Shown: positions 49,218 through 52,200 of the stretch, in pieces
How the letters are laid out: each line of letters begins with the position of its first letter
How positions within the stretch are numbered: the stretch's first letter is position 1
NCBI GenBank assembly: GCA_002269645.1
Contig: NIVC01000251.1
Location: forward strand, 434,001-498,000
Length of the DNA: 64,000 bases
Direction of reading: 5' to 3'
From: Macrostomum lignano
Taxonomy: Eukaryota
Position numbers and translations under genes: made by a program
Notes under the pieces: generated by a model
The model's database searches: none
What the model was told of the DNA's origin: nothing
The model's input: the letters and a program-made list of their open reading frames with translations, nothing else

Positions 49218-52200
49218 TTAGCAGCAGCAGCACATGCCTCCCGTTGGCTGAGGTCGCCACACCATCACCCGTTTGTTCTGCTGCGGCGTGACTAGCACAG
49301 CCATGCTGCCCTCCTGATAATTCACATCCTTGTAGCTCAGCTCCGGGTTCACCTGGCACTGCCAGCTCTTGTCCAGCTTCCTATCCAGCTCGTGCATCAT
49401 CTGCCGCTCGAACTCGCTAGCGTTCTTGTCGTTGCCGGAGCGCCTCCACTTGGAACCAACCTGAGCTAGCAGGCGCTTGACTTCATCCAAATCCTTCGGC
49501 TCCATGTCTGAGAACTCTACGCTGATCAACCTGACAGGAGTGGGTGGCGCTTCTTTATTTGAGTATCTGTTTTGAGCTGCTCAAATCAATAATTTTGTTT
49601 AAATATAGCACCTATAGCGCCAAAATGAGTGCCTGTGGCGCTTAAATGAGTGCCTGCGGCGCTAAAATGAGTTCCTGCGGCGCTAAAATGAGTGCCTGCG
49701 GCGCTAAAATGAGTGCCTGCGGCGCTAAAATGAGTTCCTGCGGCGCTAAAATGAGTGCCTGCGGCGCTAAAGGGAGTGCCTGCGGCGCTAAAATGAGTTC
49801 CTGCGGCGCTAAAATGAGTGCCTGCGGCGCTAAAATGAGTGCCTGCGGCGCTAAAATGAGTTCCTGCGGCGCTAAAATGAGTGCCTGCGGAGCTAAAATG
49901 AGTGCCTGCGGCGCTAAAATGAGTGCCTGCGGCTCCAAAATGAGTGTCTGCGGCGCTAAAATGAGTGCCTTCGGTGCTAAAATGAGTGTCTGCGGCGCTA
50001 AAATGAGTTCCTGCGGCGCTAAAATGAGTGCCTGCGGAGCTAAAATGAGTGCCTGCGGCGCTAAAATGAGTGTCTGCGGCGCTAAAATGAGTGCCTTCGG
50101 TGCTAAAATGAGTGTCTGCGGTGCTAAAATGAGTGTCTGCGGCGCTAAAATGAGTGTCTTCGGCGCTTAAATGAGTGCTTGCGGCGCTAAAATGAGTGCC
50201 TGCGGCGCTAAAATGAGTGCCTGCGGCGCTAAAATGAGTTCCTGCGGCGCTAAAATGAGTGCCTGCGGCGCTAAAATGAGTGCCTGCGGAGCTAAAATGA
50301 GTGCCTGCGGCGCTAAAATGAGTGTCTGCGGCGCTAAAATGAGTGCCTGCGGCTCCAAAATGAGTGTCTGCGGCGCTAAAATGAGTGCCTTCGGTGCTAA
50401 AATGAGTGTCTGCGGCGCTTAAATGAGTGCTTGCGGCGCTAAAATGAGTGCCTGCGGCGCTAAAATGAGTGCCTGCGGCGCTAGAATGAGTGCCTGCGGC
50501 GCTAAAATGAGTGCCTGCGGCGCTAAAATGAGTGCCTGCGGCGCTAAAATGAGTGTCTGCGGCGCTAGAATGAGTCTCTGCGGCGCTAAAATGAGTGTCT
50601 GCGGCGCTAAAATGAGTTCCTGCGGCGCTAAAATGAGTGCCTGCGGTGCCAAAATGAGTGTCTGCGGCGCTAAAATGAGTGCCTGCGGCGCTAAAATGAG
50701 TGTCTGCGGCGCTAAAATGAGTTCCTGCGGCGCTAAAATGAGTGCCTGCGGCGCTAAAATGAGTGCCTGCGGCGCTAAAATGAGTGCCTGCGGTGCTAAA
50801 ATGAGTGCCTGCGGCGCTAAAATGAGTGTTTGTGGCGCTAAAATGAGTGCCTGCGGCGCTAAAATGAGTGTCTGCGGCGCTAAAATGAGTGTCTGCGGCG
50901 CTAAAATGAGTGCCTGCGGCGCTAAAATGAGTGTCTGCGGCGCTACGTATGCAGGCACAGCGGCCTGTCCTGACTCTCTAATCATGAAGTGCAAACTTTT
51001 TCAAAGTCTTGTTTAAACTCTGATGCTTTCTTGATAGTTATCTGCTCAAACTCACGAAGGATCATCGTCGCCTAATTCAATTGCGACCTCTTCGGGTGAA
51101 GCTTTCGAACTAAAATCGACAAAAAAAGGATCATAAAACATCAATTGTCAAGGTGAGATTATTCATCTTGAAAACAGACTGCATATAGTAATATTCCTTA
51201 CTTCACTCCTGCTCGAGCCTTTGCGGAAGTTTGCGGTCTGAAATTTTGATCGATTTTAAGATTACGTTCGTAGAGTCGATAATATTCTGAGACTCAGCTA
51301 GGTAATTACCGGCAACTGTTTTCACTTACTGAATAACTTCGTCTTCTACTTCTTCCGGTTCTTCTTTCGGTTTAGGTGGCTCGGTTCTCACTTTCCTGGC
51401 CTGTTGAGGTCTAAATATGGAAATAAATTCAACTTAGTCTAGGCCTGATCAAATTGTAAACTAAATGAGGACTCACTCAATGTTCTCCTTGACCTCGTCC
51501 TGTTCAACGGGTTTGCTGAAAACAAAAACAAAAAAAAGTGTTTGTTTGTTTTAATTGTTACATCACAATAATCTTTATTCCTTCATTCTGGATTCAAACC
51601 TAGGGGTTGCTCGAGGAAGTCGACTCGTGCGTCTAAAAGGTAAGTGGTAGAGTTTGATTATTTCTTTAAAAAAATAACTTTATAAGATGACGGGGTAACA
51701 GACCTGTTAGCTCTGTCGGAGTCTGCAGGCTTTTGCTGTTGCTGTTGCTGGCGCTGGGCCACCGTCTTGCGTGCCTCCCGACTATAAAACGCGAAAAGAG
51801 GCAATCCTAATTTTCTAAACGAAAAGCTTTATGGTTATTAATAGAGCCATAAGAAAGGCATGACACGAAGGGAATGGGATATTAGAAAATTAGCAAAGGT
51901 AGGATTAAAGGCGATCTCAAATCTCAAATCGATCACAAAGGAAGTCCAAAGTGATCAGTACCCAAAAGTGGGTAAGCGCAGGGCCAAATGAGTCAAAGAA
52001 GCCACAGGCGGCGTCTACTCATATATGGAAAACGAGAGCTGCATAAGTTGCGCTGAAAAACACGTCCCATGCGCGTGACTCGTGATGATCACGACCTTGA
52101 ACTGCCCTTTTACCGGCGTTGCCAAGCAGCCGAGTGACGTCACCTGTCTAGCCATACTGTTATTGGCAACTTACATGAGGTTAGTGCGCGGCACTCAAAA

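Follow-up and report, generated by a model that had tools for sequence, protein, structure and literature searches.

The TAL/CaBP proteins of flatworms (SmTAL1-13, FhCaBP1-4, CsTAL3) join a pair of EF-hands to a dynein-light-chain-like (DLC-like) domain, a fusion that has been described as limited to parasitic flatworms or trematodes (PMC4300400, PMC12347358). In FhCaBP4 the DLC-like domain is the dimer interface, while Ca2+ is bound by EF-hand 2 (PMC12347358). Proteins of this kind have been promoted as parasite-specific drug and vaccine targets. Other traits ascribed to the family are Ca2+ binding, DLC-mediated dimerisation, location in the tegument and IgE reactivity. Here we describe a TAL-like gene of Macrostomum lignano, a flatworm with a free-living habit, located in a stretch of 64,000 nucleotides (nt) of contig NIVC01000251.1 (assembly GCA_002269645.1, positions 434,001 to 498,000, hereafter "the window"), in which the segment linking the two domains is encoded by six small exons.

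Small exons that preserve the reading frame are known from two other groups of genes. Micro-exon genes (MEGs), which are described as specific to Schistosomatidae, encode secreted proteins with a signal peptide. They consist of 10-20 exons of 6-81 nt, most of them 15 nt in length, and the introns that separate these micro-exons are long (0.1-5 kb). Runs of exons of the same phase, with documented isoforms, are also found in other animal genes, e.g. in the PEVK region of titin and among the 54-nt exons of collagen. The initial annotation of the window, made from the sequence alone, had proposed that the linker exons generate up to 64 isoforms and represent a possible forerunner of MEG-like architecture. 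We arrived at a different explanation, which taken as a whole we regard as somewhat probable, namely that this is a TAL/CaBP gene with a cysteine tail, whose constitutive linker exons grew behind a conserved phase-2 intron and whose product would act as a membrane-held dimer with a long tether.

Exon-intron structure and identity of the locus

The gene was rebuilt from the sequence of positions 48800-53400 of the window. It lies on the minus strand, runs from 53224 to 49218, and comprises the following nine exons:

e1, 53111..53224, minus strand, 114 nt: ATG at 53224; EF-hand 1; ends in phase 0 just ahead of the conserved KW motif
e2, 52477..52577, minus strand, 101 nt: EF-hand 2 with a canonical loop (DSNKDGKFTFSE), followed by the conserved phase-2 intron of the family
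e3, 51704..51781, minus strand, 78 nt, phase 2-2: REARKTVAQRQQQQQQKPADSDRAN; predicted helix continuation, then start of the linker; suboptimal donor CAG/GTCTGT
e4, 51600..51632, minus strand, 33 nt, phase 2-2: RTSRLPRATPS; weakest donor of the gene, TAG/GTTTGA, kept in both other genomic copies (see below)
e5, 51477..51515, minus strand, 39 nt, phase 2-2: KPVEQDEVKENIE
e6, 51330..51410, minus strand, 81 nt, phase 2-2: PQQARKVRTEPPKPKEEPEEVEDEVIQ
e7, 51202..51237, minus strand, 36 nt, phase 2-2: PQTSAKARAGVN
e8, 51056..51109, minus strand, 54 nt, phase 2-2: SKASPEEVAIELGDDDPS
e9, 49218..49530, minus strand, 313 nt including the stop codon: DLC-like domain and C-terminal GGMCCCC tail

Introns 1 to 8 measure 533, 695, 71, 84, 66, 92, 92 and 1525 nt; all of them are of the GT..AG type with T-rich acceptors, and retention of any one would introduce a premature stop. 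Published values for the mean intron length of M. lignano, which are means and not a distribution, are 1.1-1.4 kb (sources including PMC5730564). On rebuilding, the structural core of the initial annotation was reproduced exactly: six linker exons (78/33/39/81/36/54 nt), each with a length divisible by 3 and each bounded by phase-2 introns, short introns of 66-92 nt between them (71/84/66/92/92 nt), and exon-end dinucleotides CT/AG/AG/GA/CA/AA/TC for e2-e8. Six exons of random length would all be divisible by 3 with p ~0.0014, and this shared property of the linker exons is not due to chance. The six exons make up 321 of 846 coding nt (38% of the coding sequence).

It had also been noted that no exon skipping would create a stop codon at a junction. 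This is correct as an observation, as all 64 of the 64 skipping combinations remain open and yield 56 distinct protein lengths between 175 and 282 residues. As a sign of design we rejected it, because seven donors without TA or TG are expected by chance with p ~0.39, so that the absence of junction stops carries no information.

The spliced product of the nine exons has 282 residues and is residue-for-residue identical to GenBank PAA87050.1 ('hypothetical protein BOX15_Mlig019043g1', Macrostomum lignano). The span of the annotated gene, 4007 nt, equals that of the rebuilt model, and the 10,007 nt that we compared with NIVC01000251.1 were identical; the locus is the already annotated M. lignano gene BOX15_Mlig019043g1. 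We found two further copies of the gene, Mlig017693g1 and Mlig017693g2, with proteins 99% identical; the contigs that carry the three loci are NIVC01000251.1, NIVC01001879.1 and NIVC01000175.1. Both have nine exons of equal sizes, intact splice sites, and short introns that are nearly alike. An artefact of the gene model is ruled out by the identity with the GenBank protein, by the repetition of the structure in the two other copies, and by the stops that would result from intron retention. A search of the literature and its supplements for Mlig019043 and Mlig017693 returned nothing relevant.

At the 5' end of the gene, a sequence resembling a good acceptor (tttttag; 53225-53235, minus strand) ends 2 nt ahead of the ATG and may serve spliced-leader trans-splicing; one of the other copies (L001) retains it, and the remaining one (L002) reads ttttgg.

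Domain architecture and membership in the TAL/CaBP family

The protein is a member of the flatworm TAL/CaBP family and belongs to the subgroup with a C-terminal cysteine cluster. The description of the gene as TAL-like is borne out by both of its domains, with the EF-hand pair nearest to CsTAL3 and FhCaBP4, and the model of the C-terminal domain nearest to the DLC-like domains of FhCaBP2 and CsTAL3. The N-terminal EF-hand pair (residues 5-59) matches Pfam EF-hand_7 with E 3.4e-7 and 30.9 bits (cut-off 30). The best matches of a phmmer search against the PDB were the EF-hand domain of CsTAL3 of Clonorchis (5x2e, E 1.3e-8) and FhCaBP4 of Fasciola, and Foldseek gave a TM-score of 0.84 to 5x2e. 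By reading of the sequence, the loop of EF-hand 2 (DSNKDGKFTFSE) is canonical; in the loop of EF-hand 1 (DTDHDLVIHEAD), positions 6 and 12 are occupied by Leu and Asp, respectively.

The signal for the second domain is weak at the level of sequence (Pfam Dynein_light, E 0.019, 15.8 bits, i.e. under the cut-off of 29.1). The C-terminal half of the full-length model was too poor for a firm fold match; we therefore modelled the C-terminal 108 residues alone, on an alignment of only 6 sequences. The resulting model has a predicted local distance difference test (pLDDT) score of 80, a predicted TM-score of 0.71, and the order beta-alpha-alpha-beta-beta-beta. Its best matches in the PDB are the DLC-like domain of FhCaBP2 (5fx0, E 1.4e-4, TM-score 0.70/0.76; also 5fwz) and that of CsTAL3 (5x2d), followed by LC8/DYNLL proteins. 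To judge by this model, the gene encodes a C-terminal DLC-like domain.

Between the two domains we predict an intrinsically disordered linker of ~90-100 residues, rich in acidic and basic side chains. In the full-length model the EF-hands are confident, a helix comprising residues 65-87 runs into e3, and residues 92-181 have pLDDT <50. The suggestion that the six small exons encode nothing but disordered linker thus agrees with the prediction for residues 92-181 and fails for the first half of e3 (REARKTVAQRQQ...), which is predicted to prolong the helix that follows the EF-hands (H65-87, pLDDT 62-74). Within the linker, basic segments (RRTSRLPR, ARKVRTEPPKPK and AKARAG) alternate with acidic ones (EQDEVKENIE, EEPEEVEDEV and PEEVAIELGDDD), a pattern that may reflect a polyampholyte able to become compact. 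Canonical TALs were said to have short linkers, and this agrees with FhCaBP4, in which the linker comprises residues 91-99 (PMC12347358).

An exhaustive HMMER search identified 71 relatives, mostly of 170-250 residues and alike in their two-domain layout, from trematodes, cestodes, monogeneans, a second M. lignano gene, and environmental transcript contigs. Pfam Dynein_light matches 22 of the 26 family members that were scanned. Relatives with a cysteine tail include a Schistosoma japonicum 'putative tegumental protein' and sequences from Paragonimus, Mesocestoides and Cichlidogyrus.

The published restriction of EF-hand/DLC fusions to parasites does not hold, as free-living M. lignano possesses at least two kinds, the Cys-tailed gene in the window and a second, canonical TAL-like gene (PAA61473.1). 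Their presence in a free-living worm contradicts the published restriction, not the membership of the gene in the family. A literature search on TAL proteins in Macrostomum found no paper linking the two.

Several database entries related to the family deserve a comment. The sequence of UniProt D3PJ97 ('Tegument antigen') is that of a typical flatworm TAL, yet it is assigned to a copepod, the salmon louse Lepeophtheirus salmonis; its source may be a flatworm that inhabits the louse and not the louse. In some database proteins a TAL-type EF-hand domain is fused to ribosomal protein L6, and one Sparganum TAL is named '60S ribosomal protein L6'. This suggests that in several flatworms RPL6 lies next to a TAL gene, or is transcribed together with it, and that gene prediction has joined the two. 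The environmental JGI sample 3300019149 (SRR3745356) contains two uninterrupted transcripts of ~0.9 kb that encode relatives of 233 and 242 residues with long acidic linkers. The nearest relative from outside Macrostomum (P0007, listed with these transcripts) has 34% identity to our protein (E 1.5e-20).

Gene structure of the family and origin of the uniform phase

In order to place the six linker exons in the context of the family, the exons of seven relatives were mapped onto their genomic loci, giving eight genes for comparison, including the one in the window. The relatives have the following structures:

Cys-tailed genes of S. japonicum, S. rodhaini and Trichobilharzia: exons of 123/92/343 nt, intron phases 0 and 2
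Canonical TAL of S. turkestanicum: exons of 117/89/337 nt, intron phases 0 and 2
Canonical M. lignano paralogue Mlig005207g1: exons of 114/95/325 nt, intron phases 0 and 2
Long-linker gene of Trichobilharzia: exons of 114/95/490 nt, intron phases 0 and 2
Long-linker Cys-tailed gene of the monogenean Cichlidogyrus: exons of 263/499 nt, intron phase 2 only

A phase-2 intron after the EF-hand pair is present in all seven relatives and a phase-0 intron within the pair in six of them. The phase-0 intron is always located just ahead of [KRN]W and the phase-2 intron 4-9 residues past LG[LVI]; these correspond to introns 1 and 2 of the gene in the window, which thereby shows the gene structure of the family in addition to its domains. 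Since the two kinds of TAL-like genes in M. lignano share these positions with the genes of parasites, the TAL family is older than parasitism.

None of the seven relatives has an intron downstream of the phase-2 intron. Where their linkers are long, they sit within the last exon, and among the eight genes only the one in the window has a split linker. Because the relatives have no intron there, the ancestral gene had a single phase-2 intron after the EF-hand pair and none further downstream. Any exon added behind that intron must be of the 2-2 type if the DLC-like domain is to stay in frame, and this is why all linker exons share that phase. To judge from these structures, the symmetry is a historical constraint, regardless of any alternative use of the exons. 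The initial annotation had treated it as a device for producing up to 64 isoforms; this interpretation is unsupported, as the phase is forced by the position behind the conserved phase-2 intron.

The linker likely grew by tandem duplication of a short module consisting of an exon plus its intron, although the similarity on which this is based is suggestive only. Collinear similarity was detected between e6 and e7+e8 (p ~0.01) and between e4+e5 and e6 (p ~0.02), with both values preceding correction for six comparisons. This limit weighs against the duplication, as does the result of a search for DNA-level repeats among the linker exons and introns, in which none was found apart from one two-copy match of 13 nt that looks like chance. 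Duplication of such a module would account at once for the phase that the linker exons share, for the minimal size of all the introns between them, and for their collinear similarity.

An alternative is that the linker was once a single long exon that was later cut by six independent intron gains, without any addition or duplication of exons. It agrees with the long-linker relatives (Cichlidogyrus, Trichobilharzia), which keep the linker in one exon, and with the fact that e3 and the relatives' last exon align at their starts. Six gains that all fall in phase 2 would, however, have a probability of (1/3)^6 ~0.0014 unless the mechanism of insertion is phase-biased, and the introns of minimal size and the collinear modules fit duplication better. 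We regard independent intron gain as improbable and retain the growth of the linker by duplication behind the phase-2 intron.

Splicing of the linker exons

The six small exons are most likely constitutive. The GenBank annotation of M. lignano was built with StringTie/TACO on RNA-seq data (SRP082513 and SRR2682326) and dropped only those alternative transcripts that have an identical coding sequence (PMC5730564). At all three loci this RNA-seq-guided annotation contains only the 282-residue protein with every exon included, and our searches of protein databases revealed no further NCBI protein for these loci. When transcript contigs of the gene were sought among database proteins, nothing but models came up, either genome-derived or from UniProt. 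Of the 15 codons in the linker exons that are substituted between the copies, 11 have synonymous changes (P ~3e-4 versus the neutral expectation), and this bias indicates that the linker exons are translated. Splicing of introns as short as 66-92 nt normally proceeds by intron definition, a mode in which retention is favoured over exon skipping.

Several further observations weigh on the other side. The case for constitutive splicing rests on the lack of other isoforms in a short-read assembly, and the conservation of exons across the copies is weakly informative because they are only 1-4% apart. The donors of e3 and e4 (CAG/GTCTGT and TAG/GTTTGA) are weak in all three copies, so skipping would be allowed. 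Finally, two UniProt models of 241 residues (P0002 and P0005) lack exactly e4 and e7+e8. The weak donors and the two shorter models, together with the symmetry of all six exons, by which any skip stays in frame, and with the fact that recently added exons are often alternative, would fit limited alternative splicing, in which one to three cassette exons produce a few isoforms with different linker lengths while the full-length form predominates. Such cassettes would most likely be e4, whose GTTTGA donor is weak, and e7+e8 as a pair.

We consider limited alternative splicing possible but doubtful. The two 241-residue models come from the same older ML2-derived annotation set that yielded a garbled third model (P0006, UniProt A0A1I8HS50), which starts at an internal out-of-frame ATG, has e7 in the wrong frame, and omits e4. 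The 33-nt e4 is missing from all three older models. Given the state of P0006, we treated the two 241-residue models as prediction errors around small exons and rejected them as evidence of isoforms. A shorter protein is absent from the RNA-seq-guided annotation, the short introns disfavour exon skipping, and the synonymous bias of the substitutions indicates that the exons are normally translated.

Two stronger versions of alternative splicing are less probable still. According to one, the six exons are independent cassettes, specific to stages or tissues, so that one gene in three copies gives rise to graded tether lengths between the Ca2+ sensor and a membrane-anchored dimerisation module. 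We regard it as unlikely; if true, the use of cassettes would amount to a molecular ruler set by splicing, in a family thought to be parasite-specific. The other, that of the initial annotation, is combinatorial splicing with up to 64 isoforms acting as a spacer of tunable length, in a gene that is a free-living forerunner of the schistosome MEG architecture. The symmetry it builds on is real (p ~0.0014 for random lengths), and the 64 combinations are open with their 56 distinct lengths. Against this, the symmetry is forced downstream of the conserved phase-2 intron, the avoidance of junction stops is expected by chance (0.39), the transcript-based annotation holds the full-inclusion form only, and the gene lacks the hallmarks of MEGs, themselves described as specific to Schistosomatidae. 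The combination of a 64-isoform spacer and a MEG forerunner is unsupported, unlikely on present evidence, and in our estimation very improbable.

A putative membrane-held dimer with a long tether

The properties of the protein can be combined into a tentative scheme. On the model of FhCaBP4 and other TALs, a dimer would be held together by the DLC-like domains. The CCCC tail may, by the same analogy, be S-acylated, in which case the dimer would probably be anchored at the membrane. Each Ca2+-sensing EF-hand domain would then be carried on a flexible tether of ~100 residues. The ancestral gene from which this arrangement arose had one phase-2 intron after the EF-hand pair, and exons added there later had to be 2-2 to keep the frame, their likely source being tandem duplication of an exon-plus-intron module.

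Repeats within the introns and neighbouring genes

Three repeat arrays are located within the introns of the gene:

49617..50945, minisatellite with a 21-nt unit (GCGCTAAAATGAGTGCCTGCG), 63 copies, 92% matches, occupying most of intron 8
52304..52467, (ACAG)n microsatellite at the start of intron 2
52765..53068, 22-nt tandem array of ~14 copies in intron 1

Because of the 21-nt minisatellite, intron 8 is 1525 nt long here, compared with 494 and 519 nt in the other two copies. The length of intron 1 also varies across the three copies (533, 841 and 4858 nt). The near-identical copies differ mainly through the expansion of repeats within introns.

Downstream of the TAL-like gene, at 45162-46748 on the minus strand, there is a phospholipase B-like gene, which is found likewise at both other copies. 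In the window it has two single-base indels relative to the intact open reading frame of 528 residues in L001, which place residues ~193-485 in another frame; this copy is either pseudogenised or affected by an assembly error. Other large open reading frame pieces, all on the minus strand, belong to a cysteinyl-tRNA synthetase fragment, an RRM/FoP-domain protein and a Ribosomal_L1-domain protein, at 19979-21655, 34148-34861 and 36905-38137.

Comparison with known systems

With MEGs the gene in the window shares a series of small symmetric exons, whose skipping would in principle leave the frame intact, and this symmetry is the sole common feature. Unlike in MEGs, the introns between the small exons are of 66-92 nt and two folded domains are encoded in ordinary exons. 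The suggestion of a free-living MEG precursor did not survive this comparison: only two of the six exons (which range from 33 to 81 nt) are of 36 nt or less, the introns are short, there is no homology, and a signal peptide is lacking, since the N-terminus (MEFLNVFAAVDTDHD) is the first EF-hand helix without a hydrophobic leader (as read from the sequence by eye, with no predictor run). The label of a MEG precursor has no basis.

The runs of exons in titin PEVK and collagen offer another comparison. Like them, the linker exons have low-complexity sequence, uniform phase and a probable origin by exon duplication, and can be skipped in frame; unlike in titin and collagen, no isoform is documented for the gene in the window. 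On a small scale, the six-exon linker cleanly illustrates how the later growth of a gene is constrained by a conserved intron phase, and it offers a testable case of whether splicing controls linker length.

Among the nearest described proteins are the Cys-tailed relatives of the same subgroup, i.e. TNN16918.1 and KAH8868254.1 of S. japonicum and their kin in Paragonimus, Mesocestoides and Cichlidogyrus, with which the protein shares the EF-hand pair, a divergent DLC-like domain with a conserved Trp, and the Cys cluster. They differ from it in having 174-185 residues and three exons (123/92/343 nt); the Cichlidogyrus protein has 253 residues, with its long linker within the last exon.

In relation to the TALs as a whole (SmTAL1-13, FhCaBP1-4, CsTAL3), a TAL-family gene in a free-living flatworm with a linker uniquely split into small exons is mildly new. 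The split linker is a genuine oddity within the family and by itself a modest finding; the presence of the family in M. lignano opens it to study in a free-living model in which transgenesis is available. The gene departs from other TALs in its linker of ~100 residues (versus ~10 in FhCaBP4) encoded by six small exons, in its divergent DLC-like domain, its CCCC tail and its free-living host, and agrees with them in the N-terminal EF-hand pair, the C-terminal DLC-like domain, and the positions and phases of two introns.

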